DNA of 64,000 nucleotides from Klebsormidium nitens (GCA_000708835.1 DF237040.1:124001-188000), one strand, 5' to 3'. Counted from the stretch's first letter, positions 8,645 through 49,800 are shown. The notes: generated by a model from the letters alone, not told the origin. Translations and numbers: made by a program.

Positions 8645-11600
8645 ATGGCGCCGCGTCCACCCCGAAAGATCCCAGAGTTCACGGAGGTCGATTACAAGAC
8701 TAAGGCAGGGGTGGCCTGGAGCCACAACTACCTGAATCAGAAGCCATGGCACCCTATGAGTTACCCCAACCAGCGCCGCAAGTGGATTGCGGAGCAGGAG
8801 CATGCCGTGCGGGAGCAGCAGAAGGGGGTTGCAGCCAAAGAGGTGATTGACTTGGGATCCAAGTGTTCGAAAACTCAATGCTCAAAGGTCCTAATTGTGG
8901 TGCCACCAATTGATCAGGAGTTCATGAATGTTCTCTTCATATTCTCCCGATCGGACTGTTAGCTGCCAGCACTCAGATAGGGGGACAAGAGTGTGAAATG
9001 AGGGTCACCCAAAAAGGGCTGCAGCTTCATCTGTGCACAACGCATCTGCAATGTTCTCCGCCTACTCACCTGCATTTCGTCACCCGTCCTATTAGCTCAC
9101 AAACATCCCTGAAGAGCTCTGGCAGTTGAGTCCGGCATCACATGAAGAGTGGATGCAGAATTCACAAGGGCCGTCTCATCTAGTCCAAATTGGACCTTTG
9201 GTGGACACCTCCTCCTTGATTTGAGCAGAAGTGGGATAAAAGCATGGGCGATGAGTTACATAGCTAATCTTTAGCCGGCTCGCCATGACGCCCACCTGTT
9301 CACTGAACTTGTCCTGGGTTCAATTATCTTCTTTTGTCCGGACCCGCTAGTAGCAAAAGGGTTGGACACTTTCTGAAGGTCCTGTTGATGTGTAGAACTT
9401 AAGTTGCATCACATATACCTGTGAAGAAAGCTGAACTAAACCTGGGAACAGCGATTTTGAGCAATTTGGCGCTCTTAACCCCTTTTTTTGCTGCGTGCAG
9501 TTTGCGGAGGAGCAGGAGTTTTTCAAAGAGGCAGCCTTGCTGAGCGAAAGTGAGCGCAAAAGGGTGAGTCCCTTTACCTGCTGACATTCTTCTAACCAAC
9601 AATGCATGAAATCTGCCTGGCGGAATAACGAGTATTGTTAAATTTTGAATAGAGGGGAGAGGGTAGAGGGGTTTGCTGCCGCGCTCTGTCCATTCTTTGA
9701 GGATTGGTTCCTTTTTGCAACCTTTTATAAAATGCAAGGTCACAACAAAATCGTGCTCTTACAGTTTTGACCAACGGGGCAGACCAAACCGCTCACGTAA
9801 CTGCACCTTGTAATTGAACGAAGTTTGGTCAAGCCCCGTCAGACACCCCTGTGGCCCAGTGCTGACGAGAATGCAGAAAGTTGTTGATATCAGTTTCTTG
9901 TGCTTATACAGTTACAACAGGGTTACAGGCACCAATAAGACCGGAAGAAACATCATGAAAGTGAAATGAGAATATGTTCGCCATTTGTGTAGTCCAACAA
10001 CTGAGTACTCATAGTACAGTCGTTTTGCTTTTCCCTCAGATTGAGCTGGCTCAGGCAGTCAGCTTCATGTACCAGCGCCCCCCAGGGTACAATCCCGACA
10101 TCGACATCAAGCGCCAGGAGAAGCCGGAAGAGAAAGCGGAGGAAGCCAAGAAGCCACGGGCCAAGGACGTCTTTGGCAGGAGCATTGCGACGGGGGAGGA
10201 GTTTGAGGCTCTCAAGGACGCCCCCAAGTGAGTCTAGCGCTCTCGAACATCAAGTGTTATCTCTAAGAGGGGCCTACTTGGTCTGATCTCGCTTGCAGGG
10301 TGCTGTAGCGGCAGGCTTGCATACTACTCTTCCGGAGGCTGCGCTTTGCAGAGGTCTTTGGACGATCTTCAGATCAGCTTTGTCGTCCACTTGTTTTTCA
10401 TCAATCTCCAACTTACAAGCAACGACGAGGAAGGCTCTTGGGAAGTAACGCTTCGCGTAGAACCGGATATTTCTGCTCCGAACCATCTCCTCTATCTGCT
10501 TATCGCTTCTAACACGTCGCTTTCCTTGTCCGTCTCCACGATTGTGATGCACCTGACATCTCGACACCTTTTTGCAGGCTCGAAACTGGCATTGTGGGCA
10601 AGGCCAAGCCGTTCGGCATCGAGATCCGCAACGTCAAGTGCGCGCGCTGCGGTGCGTTCGGACACCAGAGCGGCGAACGCGACTGTCCGCTGCGGGACGT
10701 TCTGATGCCGGGAGAGGCCGAGCGGCAGAAGAGGGAGGATCCGCTCCAAGCAATCCTGAACACAGTACCACAGGAAGCGGTAAGCCTCATCGATTTGCAG
10801 TCGTTTTCAGGTTCGTGTGGTCGCCGCGGGGTGGTGTGTGACTGACGGGATAGTGCCGGTTTGAGCGGACAAGCTTTGAGCACGTTGGGACCTGCCGAGG
10901 TGGTTGTTGCCAACGACCGTGGCCAGCGATCCTGTTACGGCCTTCAGTGTCACGCGGGTACTTGCCCGGCGCTTTTGAGTTCCTGGGGGCTTTGGGATGA
11001 GCAGAGAATTTTTTCTGAGAGCCACGATCTGTATGCACTTTAAGAGGGCCGAACACACTGAAACCTCTCGAGATTGGGGCGTGAAATTTTCAAGAGTGTC
11101 GACTCGGCCTAAGGTCGTTTCGCCTCAGGTGGGAAGGCCGATCTGAGAGGTCGTGCGTCCAGAACCAAAAGGTCAAGGGAGAGGCAGTCTGCTCAGTTCG
11201 CATCTTCAAGTTCCTTTCAAAACTAGGCGAGGCCTTTCATAGAATCGCAATGAAGTGCAGACTTAACATAGCACCTCGTCTGAGGAGCTTCTTTTCGTCA
11301 GACCGGCACGGTATCGACTGTGCTTTTGAAAATGCCGGGATCTGATCGAGCACTTAGTGGACAAGAAGTGATGGAGGAGACTACCCTCTCAAGTAGCGTT
11401 TGTTGAGTGCGCCATTCGTGCTGCACAAACAAATTGCAGGCCTTTTAGAAGCGCGTCATCGGTGCGTAGACCAGTTTCGGCTTCCCCCCTCCTCTTCACA
11501 ATATACCTCAAGCACATCCCTAGCACAGCTCTTTTGCATTCACTCTCCGCTTTTTCTCGGTGACTGACACTCAAGATCACGCTTCCGTTTTGCAGCCCAA

Positions 11601-40900: not shown

Positions 40901-42467
40901 TCGACTGGTATACGACAAGGCCCTCCCGCGCAACCTTGAGAGAGCTGTCGGGCCTGATTTGTCAGCAGAGAATCTGGTGGTAGTTTGTACCGGGCGTAAA
41001 CATGACGTTACATCGTTCCTTGCCTTTCCGCAGAAAGTACGCCGAAGCAGTCGACTGGTATACGACATGGCCCTCCCGGCGCAACCTCTAGAGGGCTGTT
41101 GATTTGTTTTTTGAGCAAACATTTTCTGATCTATTTCATACCACCAATATCTCGGGCGGCAGTTCCTACCGGCTGTATTACAACAAAACATCGTTCCTTC
41201 GTTTCTGCAGAAAGTATATTGTAGACGGGTATGCGACAAAACCTTCAAAAGGGCCGTTGTTCTTGCATTCTGAGCGGATATTCCGGGTAGTGATTCTGAT
41301 GACAAAACATTGTTCCTTCGTCTCCGCAGAAAATACGCCGAAGCAATTGACTGGTACGATAAGGCTCTGGGCCTGTGTCCCCGCTCCGCCAGCACCTATG
41401 CCGCGCTCGGCTACACGCACCACCTCATGGTGAGCCGTGACGTCACCTTGATGACGTCACGAGGCAGTCACGTGCTTGCATGACCTCAGAATTGGCCCCT
41501 GCAGCGGCCGCTGATTTGTGAGGCGAACGGCCCCACTCGGCGACACAAACGAAGTCAAGAACATGTCGCCGCCTTTTTGGCGGTCAGACCATAGTGTATG
41601 GCTGCTGAACGGAGGCTCGGCTAAAGTCTTCTTTGGCCCGACAAGAGAAGACCACCGGGGTTTGGTAGGCGATTGACTGAATGACGAGTCTCACATTTGC
41701 GAAAAGAAGAAGGCTCTATTGCCTTCTTCTGTTCGCTTTATGGCACGCGGTTGCGTTATTCGCTTTCAAAAAACGATTGATAAAGCTGTCCGCTTCAAGC
41801 CGATGCAGATGCAGGGACTATGCTTGCACTCTTGGCGAGCAAAGCAACAGGGGTTTGTCCGCTGGTTCGCATCTGACGGCCTCTTCAGATTTGCTGAACG
41901 ATTGCAGTTCCTTATTCGTCACGCTTTGACGTCTCGAGAGCCGTTTATACCCGCCTGATGGAGCTGGCTGGATTTTTTTTGAAAGATCTTCTCATAACCT
42001 GAAAACGCTTCTCTACGCGTTGACCCCCTTCTGGTTTGGCAAGCTTTTTGGGAGTTTGGAATGGAGTTCCGCTGACATGGTTGACCAGCTGTTTGGAAAC
42101 GTTCGAAAGCTCCCTTTTTTGACTGCTCTTGTTTTGAACGCAGAAGCGTGTGTGTTGAACGCGGACGCCTCTTGCTTTCGTCATCCTGACATCAGAGCTG
42201 CGGAGCTAGGAGCGTCGTAGTTCTAGTTTTATCTCTTTTTAACGGTTTGCTATGGCTCTAAATTTGAGTTCGTTGCTCCCCTTCTTGCGACCATAGTCAC
42301 AGCTCCTCTTCTTTATTTTCCAGGATCAATTGACTCTTGCGATCGAGTACTACCACAAAGCTCTGGGGCTGAAAGCGGACGACACCTTCACCGCCGAGAT
42401 GCTGACACGCGCGCTCGAGGACGAAGGCGCTCGATTCGGGATGGGCGGGGGAGAAGAATTTCTGTAG
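28985..42467 (+). CDS. APC6: Anaphase-promoting complex subunit 6 (CDC16), TPR protein, ~540 aa, 13 exons
   Basis: join(28985..29119,29897..30001,30487..30612,30971..31044,31449..31488,31739..31784,32002..32081,32766..32944,33496..33696,39089..39214,40225..40491,41330..41429,42324..42467) = 1623 nt, all GT-AG, phases consistent. Motifs HLYSSAIFFADKL, FKYLAARCL, DPYCYEAFE, AWFAVGAYY, QDESDQAMAAYRTAARLFPGCHLP, DPLIYNELGV, VNLGHALRK, YYHKALGLKADDTF. Confidence 0.96.
32390..32600 (+). repeat. Two degenerate copies of the start of APC6 exon 8 in intron 7
   Basis: gaggagcgcgc core at 32401 and 32560, against exon 32784 (cagcggctgtttgaggagcgcgccgtggag). Confidence 0.75.
38981..39031 (+). repeat. 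Duplicated acceptor + first 13 codons of APC6 exon 10
   Basis: aaacag|gatcaacgagcctggacagttcttttgcgcctgcgtggttg against aaatag|gaaatccacgagtctggacagctccttcgcgccggcgtggctg. Confidence 0.9.
39880..40135 (+). repeat. Two degenerate tandem copies of acceptor + 5' part of APC6 exon 11 (167-bp period)
   Basis: AG|GTGCCAC starts at 39891, 40058 and 40225 (the real exon). Confidence 0.92.
40517..40570. repeat. Degenerate (CGTTY)n pentanucleotide microsatellite in APC6 intron 11
   Basis: tttcgtttcgtttcgttccgttcctttgtgttccgttccgtttctgttccg. Confidence 0.75.
40720..41270 (+). repeat. Array of four degenerate copies of acceptor + 5' part of APC6 exon 12
   Basis: GCAG|AAA(T/G)TA starts at 40884, 41034 and 41211, plus a more decayed copy near 40725; the real exon starts at 41330. 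The intron tail acatcgttccttcg..gcag is shared between units. Confidence 0.9.
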
Positions 42468-42767
42468 AACTCAGTTCCAAGCTTCGACACGTTTGCTCTT
42501 GATGGATCTTACAGAGGAAGCAAGGTCGAAGACCCGCGGGTTATGCAGCGGCCACGCAGCATTTTGAAGTGCTTCCGGAAAAACGGTCTGTCAAACCGCG
42601 ATCTTCTCTTCAGGAGTCGATCTCAAATCGGTCGAATCAATCGTCATCATCAACGGCCGGGTCCATCATTTTTGGGCCGAAATCCCGGCCGCCGGGAATG
42701 ATCATTACACTTCTGGCATTGTCTGCTAAGTCCGAAGTCGGTCCGACCCGGAAGTTGAAAGTTTGAA

Positions 42768-43564
42768 GTACCTACCGTGGTCCGTGCCTCCTTATACCGT
42801 AAGCACCAACCTTAGTAGTACCGTACTAACATGCCGGTTGGTCATCAATTAATTCAACGGGCGTGTTGGTACGGTACGCAAGCAGCAAAGTGACGGACCA
42901 GATTAGAAGTGCAACACTCTGGGGCCCCACAGCCGTTGATGCGGGAATGGATAAGCACAACCCACATCCAGATCAGGGCCCAGGCACCTTTTGCCGCTTG
43001 CGGCTCCACAACTTTTGCAATCATTTGCTCACGCGCTTTGCGGTACCCAGAGTCAGTAGCTTACGGTACTGTAGTACTGCACTTCAAGCGGTACTGCAGT
43101 ACTGAATCCTGGTACCACTGACTCCTCCAAGCTCCAGTACTGAGCTACGGTACTTATACCGCGTTGAGCGCTCCCTATCTATGACTAGTTAAAGGTATAT
43201 CTAGATAATAATGTGCCAGCGTACGGACCGTATGTACAGTACCTAATACTACCTAGCACCTAGTACCTATTACCTGGTTCTACCAGGATACCTAGCAAGG
43301 TATTGCTGTGAATGTAATAACTAGCTAGGCACGTACGGTAGTGTGAGTCTGACTCTCAGATTGACACACCTACTGCAGTCAGTACAGGCTGACTTTAGGT
43401 ACCTGTGACGAAGAGCTAGAACCTAGAGCAGGCTCGAGTTTCGACCTACTAGGTAGTACGTGAAAACAGATAAAAGCAAAACCTTCTCTTCACATCCTCA
43501 AAACCGCCTGTTTCCACTATTCGGGTACTCCGGTCTCGCCGCAATTCCGGGCAATTGCCAGTAC
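42768..43564 (+). promoter_or_regulatory. Dense GTAC (SBP-domain / copper-response element core) cluster upstream of the secreted Cys-rich gene
   Basis: 23 GTAC counted in 797 bp against about 3 expected, including four CCGTAC/GTACGG and five CGGTAC. The regulatory meaning is inferred. Confidence 0.65.
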
Positions 43565-43579
43565 CTCCAGCTTTGCGCC

Positions 43580-45746
43580 ATGGCGAGCGTCACGCGCAGT
43601 GCTGTGCTCCTCCTGGCGCTTGTCGCGATGGTCGTGAGCGCAACCGCTGCACGGATGGATCCTGTTCAGGTGAGCAAGGCATACCTTCAAAAGTATCTAC
43701 TTTGAGAGGATTGTGAAGTTTGACGGCGATGCGTGCGGTTTGAACCTTTGCCACATGACTGAATCTGGTCAGCCTTCAACGGAGGCCATTGAGCAGATGC
43801 TTTGATTTTGATTGGCAGCAGACCGGTGCCTGAATCGGTTTTGTCAGTGCAAACACATTTCCTTGATTCGAGGGCGCGCAAAATCAGCTCCTCTCTGAAT
43901 GCGTTTCGTGACCAGATTGACTTATACAACCCGCCCTTACATCTGCATCGACCCCTTGTTACCTACTAACACGTACGAGTAGCCACATTCCCCTTTCTGG
44001 AATGAGTCTGATTGCTGTACAATTGAGCCGAGTTGCATGTTCCTTTGCCAGAGAGTCTGATGACCAAGGATGTTACAGGCCAAACCTCCTCTGGTCAAGT
44101 TTGGATTGGAGATCATAGGGCTCTTGGTTCTGCTAAACTTGGCCACTAACTACATTCATCAGGCTTTGCATTGCTAGTCAAATGCACTGACTTGTTAACT
44201 TCTCAACGTCTTGAGAGCTTGCAGCGACCTTTGGTTGACCTAGTCAAATGCACTGACTTGTTAACTTCTCAATGTCTTGAGAGCTTGCAGCGACCTTGGT
44301 TGACCTAGAAACTTATGTCAAAAGTGTCAAGGGATAGCATTCAAGAAGCTTCTATGCAGGATTAATACTTGCGCATACAGCAACTTCTGTGGATGCAAAA
44401 AGATTTCATGTTTGCTTGATTTTTTGCAGGACGTTGCTGCCTCGGAGGCCAGCCCTGACCTCGAGCAGGTGAGCCAACGATTCCAGGAATTTTTGACTCT
44501 GCCAAGAACAGGAGCTTGTGTTTTAGATGGACGCTTTCTTGGTTTAAAGAACAGGAAAAAGCCCTCTTTCGTACACGAGCCTAGCCCGAAACCTGGCGGT
44601 AGTCATAAGATTCTCTGTTTGTTGAAGTTGGCCCTACCAGTCCTTCCTCCTATTCGTGTGGCTGCTTAGTCTGGTCTGATGATCTGCGTGACTTCCATCT
44701 GTTTGAAGCTTGCAGCACCCCGACCCCAAATCATGTCTATGCAAAAACGAAACTTATTTGGAAAGATGTTCGTTCGGCAGCTCCTTTTGAGCGCGTGTTG
44801 ACTATCCAATCGTTGGTTCTTTGCAGGATGCCTTGGAGCTTCCTGGCCGCTCGCAAATGTATGGCTGTCCGAAGATTGCTTCCAGTTGGTGCCAGGGCAG
44901 AACGGGTGTCTGCAACCCCAACGACACGTGAGTTATCCGGCTCGTCACAGGTTTTTTTTGGCGGTTGACCACAGTCGGTTACGGGCTGTTACAAAGCTGG
45001 TTGACTGTCTAATGACCAGACTCGAGCGGTAACCAGGTTTTAAACATGGCTATAACGCGGTTATTGGTCATTAAAGAACCGGAGGGAAGTTTGGTTATTG
45101 AACCTAATTAGCAGCCAAACCTTCCTGTGCGTGCAGTTTTGGGTCACATCTGGCTCCAAACGGTTCAGAGACTTCGGTCGCACAAGTTGTCACTAAGTCC
45201 AGTTTATTTCTGTAGGCTTTGGAAGATCCTGGGTACGTTCTCTGAGCGCGCCACAATGCTCTACGCACCGGAGTCCTTGCTAGGTTTCGGCTAGGAACTG
45301 CGAATGAGTTGCAGCTGTGCGTGAAGGTTCAACCGACTTGTACTGTCGTCACGCGCTTCCGTCTGACTCCGAGTGTCACTCGGAGTTGTTTTTTCGGTTA
45401 CCAAAAAGCAGAAAATCTCGACTCTTGCCCAAACCGAGGCGAGTAAAGGAGTAGTGTACGGGAACGGAAGAGGTCCAATGAGCTACTTTACGGTCCATGC
45501 CAAACTTCGGCTTACATGACGTGAGGCATACTGACCATAGATACAGCCACTAACAACAGCATTCTGCCCGAAAGCGCTTCGTGGAAAGGAAATAACACAG
45601 GCCGTTGCCATTTTTGCAGTGCGCAATGCAAATGCGGCTCGCCCCCCTGGGTCAAGAAGCCGTGGGAGTGGACCATGGGTCGTCTTTGCGACGCCGGGCT
45701 GAAGTGTCAGGTCAAAGGGCAGGATACAGTTTGTGTCCCTAAGTGA
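43580..45746 (+). CDS. Small secreted cysteine-rich protein, 118 aa (signal peptide + acidic propeptide + 8-Cys domain), family not recognised
   Basis: join(43580..43669,44430..44468,44827..44927,45620..45746) = 357 nt, GT-AG, phases 0/0/2. MASVTRSAVLLLALVAMVVSATAARMDPVQDVAASEASPDLEQDALELPGRSQMYGCPKIASSWCQGRTGVCNPNDTAQCKCGSPPWVKKPWEWTMGRLCDAGLKCQVKGQDTVCVPK*. Mostly missed by the ORF track. Confidence 0.82.
44174..44308. repeat. Near-perfect 66/65-bp tandem duplication in intron 1 of the Cys-rich gene
   Basis: Units start at 44174 and 44240 (ctagtcaaatgcactgacttgttaacttctcaa(c/t)gtcttgagagcttgcagcgacc(t)ttggttgac); one substitution and one indel. Confidence 0.92.
45366..45386. other. Perfect 10-bp inverted repeat with 1-nt loop
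   Basis: actccgagtg-t-cactcggagt. Confidence 0.85.
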
Positions 45747-46514
45747 CTGATTCCAGAAATAAGTTAGGGCTGACGATGATCAGGGTTGACGGGCTCGGCT
45801 TATGATAGACGGCCGGTTCGTGTCGGCTATTATACAGCGAGTGTTGACGTCGCTTCTGGTAGCATTTCGTCACAAGAGCCGTCAACTGTGCAAGCTTGGT
45901 TTGCCACGTGTGCGCCATGCAGTCAGTCAACCATGTTTGTTACGAAGTTAGGGGCTTTGTGTTTCATCCTTCGTCGTCCAGGGCCGTAAAAAATGACGTT
46001 ATTAGCGCCAAGTCTAGCTCATGCGATTCACTACGACCGGACCACTTTAATCAAGTACAAGTGTTCGGCGGCAATGTCTTGATTGAATGTTGATTTGAGC
46101 GCCCTTTGCGTTTGTGACCCCTCAATCCAGATGTGTTTTTAATATGCAAGACTTCCTAACTCTCAAGTTGACGACAGCCTTTAATTACATGCGATTTGCC
46201 ATGCGAGATATCTTCAATCTCTCAGGCAAGAACACGCACCGAGCCTGGCCGTTTAGGATTGGAGGAGGTTTACGCAAGTGACTTGTATTTGACATGGAAA
46301 CGCAAGATGGTCTGTAAACGGTGCCGTCTCGGGCCGGCGATATGTTCTTGCTTGATATCTGATATGTGTCGTGGAAAGTTCACGTACAGCTTGTCAAGTA
46401 GTCTCGAGATCGATTCGGACAGCAGCGCATTCCAACATCACCGTCCATGCAAAGTTTCCCGGACGTCACCGGCTGCAGCTAGATGATCGCGACCTTCTTT
46501 GCGCATCTGTATTC

Positions 46515-46530
46515 TGACACTCGAGTGTCA
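46515..46530. other. Perfect 16-bp palindrome
   Basis: tgacactcgagtgtca. Confidence 0.85.
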
Positions 46531-46608
46531 TGTCTCGACATTAGAAAGAGTGGAAGGATATAGCGCTTGATTTTGCGTGTCAGAAAAAAGAACAAGAGAA
46601 ACTGGATA

Positions 46609-46877
46609 TACCGTAGAGACATTGTCCATTCGCACTAACTTTAATTATTTTTAGGGCTTGCGAAAAAAGTTTTATTACTTTCGACGCAGGTGCGAAAATG
46701 CGGATCAAAAATAATATCTGTAGAAGCTACAAAACCTGCAAAATGAGGCTAAAAATGGTCCAAATTTGGAAAAAGCGAAAATTCTAATAATATCGTCGAT
46801 GCTGGTGCGAAATGACAAAACGTTCATAAATAGATATTCGCACCAAGGTGGTGCGAATGGACAATGTCTCTACGGTA
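46609..46877. mobile_element. MITE, Tc1/mariner-type (265 bp, 46611..46875, TA target-site duplication)
   Basis: TA-CCGTAGAGACATTGTCCATTCGCAC (46609-46635) is the exact reverse complement of GTGCGAATGGACAATGTCTCTACGG-TA (46851-46877). The interior is AT-rich, non-coding and has internal GGTGCGAA / TTCGCAC repeats. Confidence 0.88.
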
Positions 46878-49800
46878 TTCGACTTCAATTATTGCGTTCA
46901 GATCTGCTTTGCCCGGCGCCCTTGGACAAAACACAATGAGCACCTGCGCGATGGTACGTTGGGAGGTGCCCACCTGCCGGCGAAGATCATCCACGGTTGA
47001 TCAATAGAAAACTGCTTTGTAATGTACCTTCTTAAGTCGCACAAGTGCTGAAACCCTCAGAATCGAATTTTTACGGAGTCGTTCTCGGATGACTCACCAA
47101 TGCTTCCGCTCTGCAGTTGTGTAGTATCTGTAGAACATCTTCTTGCCCCCCATTGTCTCTTCCGAGACGCTTGCCCTCAACAAGCGTCAAGTTTTGGGCT
47201 TCGACCGTTGACTTTCTTTTCCATTTCGCAACGGACCGACTGCACCAGCGCGAATCTTCGCCGTCGAGTTGCGAATTCCGAACAGTTTTCCTGACCGGAG
47301 GCAGGATTTTGGTCAGATCAAAGGAGCAAATAACTAGATAAGCAGCTCGATGTTTCGACGTCTCCGAGCAACTCTCCCCCGGCGGATCCCTCTGCCTTAA
47401 TTAAGGCATCTGCTTAGTAAGCGCTGCAATATCCTGCTGCGCGCTCCGCCCACTTACGGCCTGCCACGTGTCACCCTGCCCCTGGGAGCTTGTCCGGGGG
47501 GCTTCTCCCCTGTCTTGGTCATTCCGTGGTACGCAAACAGCTGCCAAAGGCAGCTTAGAGCTTCATATGCGGATGGTGAAAGATGCTGGTATATCAAAGT
47601 TCTCGCTGTACTCCTCTTTTCGAGACTTCCAGGTTCGACTTTGTGCGTGAGAAAAAGAATCGGCAAGGTGGTTGTGACGAAAGCAGAAACTCCGTTTGCC
47701 AGTAGTCGCTCTCTCGATCGCCGTTGTCAATGGAGTCCGCTCACATGAACGTTCCGGCGACTTCTGGCCATTCCGTTTCCGCACGTTTTCCCATTTTGCC
47801 TTGCCTATGTTCTCTCCTCTCAGAGCGTAGGGCCGAACACCGTTCCTTTCCGTGTCGTTCCGTCCTCTCAGACGGGGGACGGAACGGTCAAGTAGCGAGT
47901 GGCGCTTGAGATTGTGGATCCGACACTTGCGAACCTCGTCTAAAATATCTGGTTCCGGTCAGCGCAAGGTATTTCGCCGTCTGGTTTTCTCCTCAGGACT
48001 AGCAAGTAAAATTCTCCTGCCTCAATCGTAGTCGGCTCTCCGTCAGGCAGCCCTTCTTTCCGGCCTCCAAAACGCCCGTTTTGGAATTGATTTTTCTTAA
48101 CCCTGTCGTAAAGCTTTCTAAGTTTGCAGCTTCTAATTTTCGCATGGCAATCGCCCGCAGTTTTCTCGTCCTCAGACTGCGACTACAAAGCAAAGAATGG
48201 CCTATGTAACCCAGGCCCCAATATGTCGAGTCTCCTCTACAAAAGTTCAACTCTTGTATGAAAGCGTGGCTCTTTCTTTTTCAGCCACGTGTCCTGAGGA
48301 CCCAAGCTGTATTTCTTCCGAACTACTTCCGCCTCTGACTTCTGTTCTTAAGGAGGCCGTATCCGAAAGGAAAAATAGTTTCTAAGTGAATCGCAGTCGA
48401 TGTCGAAAGGGCATCTGGTTCTTTACCGCGTACAGAAGCAATCTGGTCAAAAAAGCGCAACATTGATTGTCGAATGAGTGCGTTCCTTGAATAGCAACTG
48501 GCTGAAAGTCAAATCATTTTGAGGATGTAATTACAGCGATGTCTCTCCATTTCTATTGGTATTTCGACAGCAGAGTGATCACGCCAGGATTCTCAGCGAC
48601 TGTCGGACTCGCCAGAGTTTTCAGCCCACCGTCGGGCTTCGGAGCGAGCGGCGTTCGGATCGAGGATGCACGTGGCAAGCAAGTTGCGGGGTTCGAGGAT
48701 CAAGATCTTGAAGAACCGTTTGTATCGAGTCCAGGCAATTAGGACCTAACTTGTAGTCGTGATATTCGAGAAGAAGGAAGGGGATTACTCTCGACAGCTG
48801 GCCTGATTAAAACCCATGCACAGGGCAGCCAAAGAAGGAAGATGACCTAGTAAACGAGTATTCCCTGATACTTTGAAACATTTCTCTAGTAGATTGCGAA
48901 CAAAAGTCAGCACGACAATATATCTCTGCTTTCAAAGACGGCACGGATTCCCCTGGGCGTCTGCGGAATCCTCGAACGGACCTCTTTCGTCGAGAAGTAA
49001 CCTGGAATGTGGGCAAAGACCCACTGGTTGTCTGACGATCACTCACCTCAACAAGGGACTTCTAGACTTTTGGTTGCCAAGAAGCTCATTGGGTGAATTT
49101 TACCTTCCTCTTACCGTCTGAGAAAGGTCTGAGGCAATTAGTGTGTGAGACTACAGAACTTAAGCTGTTCCCTGTGCTAAGTGAATTGAGCGAAGTGTTG
49201 AGACTAGCTGGGCAGTTAGCCGACAATCTTGAGCATATCTTGCTCTGATGCATCTTTTCCGTAGGAAGATAAACGATTCTAGATTCCTAGATACAATCTT
49301 CCAACTTGAACTCCGTCTGCGACCAAAGCTTCCGTTAAGGACAGGGGACATCATTGAAGGCCTTGGGGTTACATAAGTTCCAAACCAAAGTGTCGTTTAA
49401 AATGGTCAGACGGAACGCAGGCAAGAGCATCTTGAAATGAGATCATCTTGCGAAGCTTCAATCATGCTTGGAGGAGAGTTCCCTAGAGACGCGGCAGCTA
49501 AGGTAGCAAGTCTTGCAGTTGTCTAATTTACCGCTTTCTTGCTGGCTTTATCCGGCTGAAACTTTGAAAATCCGTGTGAGCAAGAAGTGGCAGATATGTA
49601 CGAAGTCTCTTGTCGCGATGAAGAACAAAGGTCCAGAGCTCTACGCGGAGAAGCAGTCCGCCCTGGCGCTCTTTTCTCTGAGGGGGTGCAAAGAACCCAA
49701 GAAGGAGAAGCGATAGATGAGGCAGGCGAACAGCCCATAGCACCGTTTTCTTCTCCAGCTAAAAGGAGCGAAGCGTAGCATATGATAAGTAAAACGTCGC

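Follow-up and report, generated by a model that had tools for sequence, protein, structure and literature searches.

A small four-exon gene of the alga Klebsormidium nitens that probably encodes a secreted, disulfide-rich and tryptophan-rich peptide

Which secreted peptide systems predate land plants is a question addressed through streptophyte algae such as Klebsormidium. The subject here is a short gene on scaffold DF237040.1 of the K. nitens assembly GCA_000708835.1. The gene lies within the 64,000-nucleotide stretch of DNA that we analysed as a whole (the window; scaffold coordinate equals window coordinate plus 124000), directly downstream of a dense group of GTAC tetranucleotides. The original prediction described its product as an unrecognised secreted peptide with eight cysteines and read the GTAC sites as a promoter, proposing a role in scavenging or sparing extracellular copper or, failing that, an antimicrobial or signalling function. 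We consider here whether the gene is real, where its protein begins, what the protein may be and whether anything in it points to copper. The features concerned are as follows, in window coordinates.

42543 to 42675, plus strand: additional coding exon at the 5' end of the model deposited as GAQ81810.1, with donor G/GCCGAA (a GC donor); probably spurious
42768 to 43564, no strand: GTAC island of 23 sites, between the APC6 stop and the start codon at 43580
43580 to 43669, plus strand: exon 1, start codon within gcgccATGg; encodes the signal peptide (residues 1-24) and the beginning of the acidic spacer
44430 to 44468, plus strand: exon 2, 39 nt, phase 0/0; acidic spacer; acceptor ttttttgcag, donor gtgagc
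44827 to 44927, plus strand: exon 3, 101 nt; completes the spacer with LPGR and carries cysteines 1-3 of the domain
45620 to 45746, plus strand: exon 4, 127 nt including TGA; CxC pair, Trp/Pro/Lys loop and a predicted C-terminal disulfide-stapled beta-hairpin

The four exons were joined by a local script, from which frame, cysteine spacing, charge and composition were derived. Together they form a coding sequence of 357 nt that specifies 118 amino acids and a TGA stop, and all three introns are GT-AG, with GTGAGC or GTGAGT donors and T-rich acceptors ending in TTGCAG. On recomputation the exon structure, the frame, the signal peptide, the acidic spacer ending in LPGR and the domain of about 67 residues all agreed exactly with what had been proposed, as did the spacing of the eight cysteines and the Trp/Pro/Lys loop when read from the joined exons. 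The hydrophobic core of the signal peptide reaches an 11-residue Kyte-Doolittle maximum of 3.4 at residues 9-19 and is followed by a small and neutral c-region (S-A-T-A-A), features from which the product is predicted to be secreted. An acidic spacer of 27 residues (25-51) follows and closes with LPGR at residue 51; we know of no cleavage consensus corresponding to LPGR. The putative mature domain beyond it has 67 residues and a pI of 8.9, and contains 8 Cys, 4 Trp (6%), 1 Tyr, 7 Lys, 6 Pro, 2 Met and 0 His. Its cysteines stand at positions 57, 65, 72, 80, 82, 100, 106 and 115 of the 118-residue product (spacing 7-6-7-1-17-5-8) and its tryptophans at 64, 87, 92 and 94, with a single N-x-T sequon in the product at N75. 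The charge profile over signal peptide, spacer and mature domain is +1 / -5 / +5. Since the number of cysteines is even, they would probably form four disulfides in a secreted protein.

The exons carry the local coding signature, because their third-position GC (GC3 0.69, overall GC 61%) matches that of the last exon of the neighbouring conserved APC6 gene (GC3 0.70) and exceeds the GC of the introns (45-49%). This neighbour, an APC6/ANAPC3-TPR gene, lies upstream on the same strand and has its stop codon at 42465-42467, whilst the GenBank annotation places no gene within 3 kb downstream of the peptide gene. We conclude that a small gene for a secreted, disulfide-rich and Trp-rich peptide is probably real. 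Within its first intron, at 44174-44308, a 66-bp unit is tandemly duplicated (2.1 copies, 97% match), an arrangement that suggests no function.

The protein is not new to the databases, where it is deposited as a singleton hypothetical protein (KFL_000910290, GAQ81810.1, A0A1Y1HT57) of 199 amino acids, with entries in GenBank, UniProt and EukProt and alone in its own 90% cluster. The C-terminal 118 residues of GAQ81810.1 are those of the four-exon model, with the same three junctions, and are preceded by an N-terminal extension of 81 residues. Part of the extension is encoded by the extra 5' exon listed above, which begins 76 nt past the APC6 stop, and the remainder is read through the leader of the shorter model (43470-43579) from an acceptor at 43468-43469. 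We regard the extension as probably an annotation artefact because it depends on a GC donor, shows no codon-position bias (GC1-3 of 0.53/0.47/0.53, where the core has a GC3 of 0.69), leaves only the 76-nt gap to APC6 and buries the signal peptide. No other ATG occurs in the 265 nt of leader that precede the one at 43580, whose surroundings (gcgccATGg) are Kozak-like. We therefore prefer the 118-residue model with good, though not complete, confidence, and the true start is likely to be residue 82 of GAQ81810.1, a correction that turns an odd 199-residue protein into a classic secreted pre-pro-peptide. That the longer form is right after all, its hydrophobic stretch serving as an internal membrane anchor behind an 81-residue basic N-terminus and the GTAC island being intron 1, fits its deposition in three collections and a frame open through the leader from 43457, but seems to us a most improbable outcome in view of the weak donor, the proximity to the upstream stop, the unbiased extension and the optimal ATG and signal peptide at residue 82.

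Relatives were sought with single exons and then with residues 82-199 of GAQ81810.1. None was found among 1.84 billion representative proteins or in 5.8 billion clusters, nor in the JGI metagenomes, Pfam or the PDB. This result carries the caveat that a 41-residue query must score about 40 bits to stand out from 1.8 billion proteins, and relatives below some 40-45% identity would be missed. Exhaustive HMMER searching of the 1.84 billion representatives with exon 4 returned the 199-residue GAQ81810.1, 100% identical over the exon, and three others. The latter are giant proteins of 2018-3261 residues built of fn3, Ig or unknown repeats and are not homologues; their E-values (1e-28 to 1e-5) are an artefact, because chance matches of 2-8 bits (CDAGLSC in an fn3 repeat; PPxWxxKP...LxC at the start of an Ig I-set domain) are summed over 11-19 near-identical repeats. 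These values would be a trap for anyone taking the HMMER table at face value. Word-index searches yielded nothing for exon 4 (candidates of 23-72 residues), and with residues 82-199 of GAQ81810.1 they retrieved no protein but GAQ81810.1 (candidates of 110-348 residues); in these searches the first half of the domain, from exon 3, was thus compared with proteins of the latter length range. A PDB sequence search gave a single 12-bit chance row, and JGI metagenome contigs scanned with a degenerate pattern gave no match. Pfam scans at E<=10 with exons 1, 3 and 4 and with the full deposited protein identified no family, apart from a meaningless DUF3123 match to the signal peptide.

Within the 64-kb window, tblastn with each exon detected no paralogue. 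An open stretch on the minus strand at 9119-9193 (...CEFC...SCDAGLNCQ...) shares 7 of 8 residues with CDAGLKCQ of exon 4 (tblastn E of 0.005 without composition correction), and we treat this as probably a chance match since stop codons flank it. The K. nitens gene is best explained as single-copy and lineage-restricted.

The description of the peptide as unrecognised has thus held, with no Pfam family at E<=10, no PDB sequence match and no true homologue in the protein and metagenome searches. So has the observation that it shows no defensin, LTP, hevein or snakin pattern, these frameworks being missing from the sequence and unmatched in Pfam. The arrangement of nsLTP/8CM proteins, puroindolines included (C...C...CC...CxC...C...C), is not found, there being no adjacent CC; nor are the CS-alpha-beta defensin (CxxxC ... 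CxC), hevein (CC plus a Gly/aromatic motif) or snakin/GASA (twelve Cys) patterns. The first six cysteines loosely resemble an EGF framework, with no EGF-type Pfam match at E<=10 and EGF rows in Foldseek only at E>7.

Structure prediction was similarly uninformative as to family. AlphaFold2 (AF2) modelling of GAQ81810.1 without an alignment gave pLDDT values of 33-57 across the domain, the signal-peptide helix alone being confident, and the VIA-align rows for this model concern that helix alone. Exon 4 modelled separately reached a pLDDT of 64, and its value was 72-78 in a predicted hairpin formed by exon residues 27-32/35-40. These low-confidence models place beta-hairpins in the regions of C72-C82 and C106-C115, and the mature domain is probably all-beta. 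The exon 4 model had no significant Foldseek match and nothing at Z>=2 in VIA-align; the noise rows from Foldseek (spider knottins, EGF domains, MIT1, Dkk1) have only a Cys-stapled hairpin in common. An ESM Atlas model of residues 133-199 of GAQ81810.1 had a mean pLDDT of 0.52, and its nearest structural clusters included fungal CBM1-domain proteins (TM 0.61/0.54), GH18+CBM19 proteins, CBM14 proteins and Myxococcota hypothetical proteins, with cluster TM scores of 0.5-0.64 over about 55 residues that have little meaning at such a length. As a lead, these neighbours may point towards small disulfide-rich binding modules. The structural check suggested alongside the original prediction has therefore returned low-confidence models and no significant match to any family. 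The weak resemblance to colipase and prokineticin folds that had been suspected reduces to the short CxxGLxC hairpin, the profiles being unmatched and MIT1 and Dkk1 appearing as noise at E>6.

The reading we prefer, tentatively and at rather less than even confidence, is that of a secreted host-defence-type peptide that binds surfaces. The pre-pro layout of host-defence peptides is present, with a signal peptide, an anionic piece, a cationic Cys-rich part and an even number of cysteines (8). In the precursors of alpha-defensins and thionins, the charge of an anionic pro-piece exactly balances that of the cationic Cys-rich mature peptide, and peptides of the indolicidin type as well as puroindolines bind membranes by Trp/Pro/Lys-rich loops. 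With its Trp, Pro and Lys residues, the loop from C82 to C100 is reminiscent of these membrane-interface motifs and also of the aromatic platforms of carbohydrate-binding modules (CBMs). By this analogy, the signal peptide would direct the product into the secretory route and the acidic spacer (-5) would neutralise the cationic domain (+5) until export or trimming. Once outside the cell, the product would act as a stable host-defence-type peptide that attaches to surfaces, its exposed cationic Trp/Pro/Lys loop and other aromatic residues docking on the envelope of a microbe or on a surface of polysaccharide. The antimicrobial or signalling role offered as a fallback in the original prediction is plausible by analogy, and it is the balance of -5 and +5 between spacer and mature domain that favours it. 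Set against the defence reading are the moderate cationic charge (+5 over 67 residues), the want of a recognised cleavage consensus at LPGR, the singleton status of the gene, and fold models of low confidence with no structural match.

Were the aromatic residues instead to stack on polysaccharide, the domain might be a carbohydrate-binding, wall-associated module resembling CBM1, CBM14 or CBM19 that tethers to, or modifies, the alga's own wall or that of a microbe. We consider this unlikely, whilst acknowledging that several features are compatible with it: the Atlas neighbours named above, the presence of 4 Trp and 1 Tyr in 67 residues, and a C-terminal C-x5-C-Q-V-x6-C layout like the end of CBM1. 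However, the Pfam CBM_1, CBM_14, CBM_19 and hevein profiles are unmatched at E<=10, the aromatic pair typical of the CBM1 C-terminus is absent, and the AF2 models gave no CBM match; the Atlas neighbours themselves come from a model with a pLDDT of 0.52 and from TM values that are uninformative on some 55 residues.

It is also conceivable that nothing functional is encoded here, the gene being a product of ab initio prediction, or a young reading frame not under selection, that resembles a secreted peptide by chance. This reading, which we judge rather unlikely, draws on the status of the gene as a singleton with no relative found, on a deposited model that is CDS-only with a doubtful 5' end, and on the finding of no transcript-derived copy of the product in protein collections, itself weak evidence as the coverage of this alga by those collections is not established. 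Three strongly canonical introns across which the frame is kept argue the other way, as do a GC3 of 0.69 against an intron GC of 0.45-0.49, a bias equal to that of the conserved neighbour, and the combination of a textbook signal peptide, an even Cys count and balanced charges. We found no paper naming the gene, and it is missing both from a list of genes differentially expressed under high light (PMC9121098) and from the supplements of a K. nitens RNA-seq paper (PMC5873896).

A third alternative takes the same layout of pre-, pro- and mature parts, with the Cys-rich part at the C-terminus, as that of a secreted signalling ligand comparable to EPF, RALF or LURE. A secretory protease would then cleave the pro-peptide, and a receptor kinase would perceive the Cys-rich product. 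Receptor kinases are numerous in K. nitens, which counts in favour of this reading. Ligand families of this kind are usually multigene and conserved, though, and here no paralogues or orthologues were found; moreover there is no recognised processing site and no Pfam match to EPF, RALF, Stig1 or other plant peptide families. A signalling ligand is, in our estimation, quite unlikely, somewhat more so than a non-functional frame.

The two remaining readings turn on the GTAC island. The pile-up upstream of the coding start is present as originally described and is extreme for the window, with 23 sites in 797 bp where the density in the remainder of the window predicts about 1.9 (Poisson P ~1e-17). 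The densest 400 bp, from 43001, hold 15 sites, and elsewhere in the window no 400-bp stretch has more than 5. About 6 of the 23 sites have C at position -1 on one strand, and some of the island consists of small palindromes (CAGTACTG, GGTACC) and a TACCTAG microrepeat. It is a putative promoter and leader in the 118-residue model, but part of intron 1 in the 199-residue model.

Two further observations were made in this region. At 42818-42877, some 350 nt past the APC6 stop, lies an inverted repeat with 23-nt arms that are 87% complementary, a 14-nt loop and four GTAC sites (GTACCGTAC / GTACGGTAC). An Rfam scan of 41000-48000 detected no copper-regulated miRNA or other RNA; its one sub-threshold miRNA-family match, to the MIR1094 precursor at 43058-43113 on the plus strand, falls on GTACTG repeats (22 bits where the gathering score is 80, E of 0.56) and is most likely a low-complexity artefact.

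The more ambitious of the two readings would make the 67-residue domain the sole known member of a new disulfide-rich fold and have the island read by SBP-type or LEAFY-type factors on an environmental cue. We think this improbable; if it were true, a streptophyte alga would possess a lineage-specific extracellular defence or metal-status peptide.

The other is the copper role proposed at the outset, in which SBP factors of the CRR1/SPL7 type would act on the island to induce the peptide under copper deficiency, and the peptide would scavenge or spare extracellular copper. This draws on a real, window-extreme GTAC island directly upstream, and on the fact that K. nitens has two SPL genes and that SBP domains require the GTAC core (PMC10796333). 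However, every SBP-domain factor has GTAC as its core site, not the copper-responsive ones alone (PMC10796333), the island is in part a low-complexity palindromic repeat, and in the deposited model it is intronic. The product itself lends the proposal no backing: its mature domain has no His and only two Met, we found no copper-ligand motif and no Met-rich motif in the sequence of that domain, and the eight cysteines, being even in number in a secreted protein, are probably oxidised. Judged by this composition, the product is most probably not a copper-binding protein, and we regard the copper reading as a whole as very improbable. The practical outcome for now is a corrected gene model for one uncharacterised singleton gene, with a copper link that its product does not support.

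It remains to set the peptide beside the systems that it most resembles. With the copper-deficiency targets of CRR1/SPL7 it shares multiple upstream GTAC cores, 23 of them in its putative promoter; its product, by contrast, has no metal-ligand motif. The colipase, prokineticin (MIT1) and Dickkopf C-terminal domains share with it the short CxxGLxC motif and a Cys-closed hairpin, but these families have ten cysteines and five disulfides in another framework, where the present product has eight cysteines. The Colipase, Colipase_C, Prokineticin and Dickkopf_N profiles gave no match at E<=10 with exon 3, exon 4 or whole GAQ81810.1, and MIT1 (1imt) and Dkk1 (3s8v_X) were retrieved with the low-confidence exon 4 model at Foldseek E-values of 6.9 and 9.2 over 18-20 columns. 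The likeness to CBM1, CBM14 and CBM19 extends to size, predicted beta-hairpins, aromatic residues, a staple of the form C-x5-C ... C near the C-terminus and structural neighbours of low confidence, whereas these small modules have 4-6 cysteines against eight here and the CBM1 loop is of about 10 residues against the 17-residue Trp loop; for CBM1, the missing terminal aromatic pair and the absent Pfam CBM_1 match at E<=10 are further differences. No sequence or Cys-framework match connects the product to defensins, thionins, hevein, snakins or LTP/puroindolines, and it has neither a CC nor a CxxxC motif. What it does share with puroindolines and indolicidin is a Trp/Pro/Lys-rich stretch, predicted to be exposed, and with precursors of the alpha-defensin and thionin type a small size, a signal peptide, a charge-cancelling anionic pro-region and a disulfide-rich cationic part.
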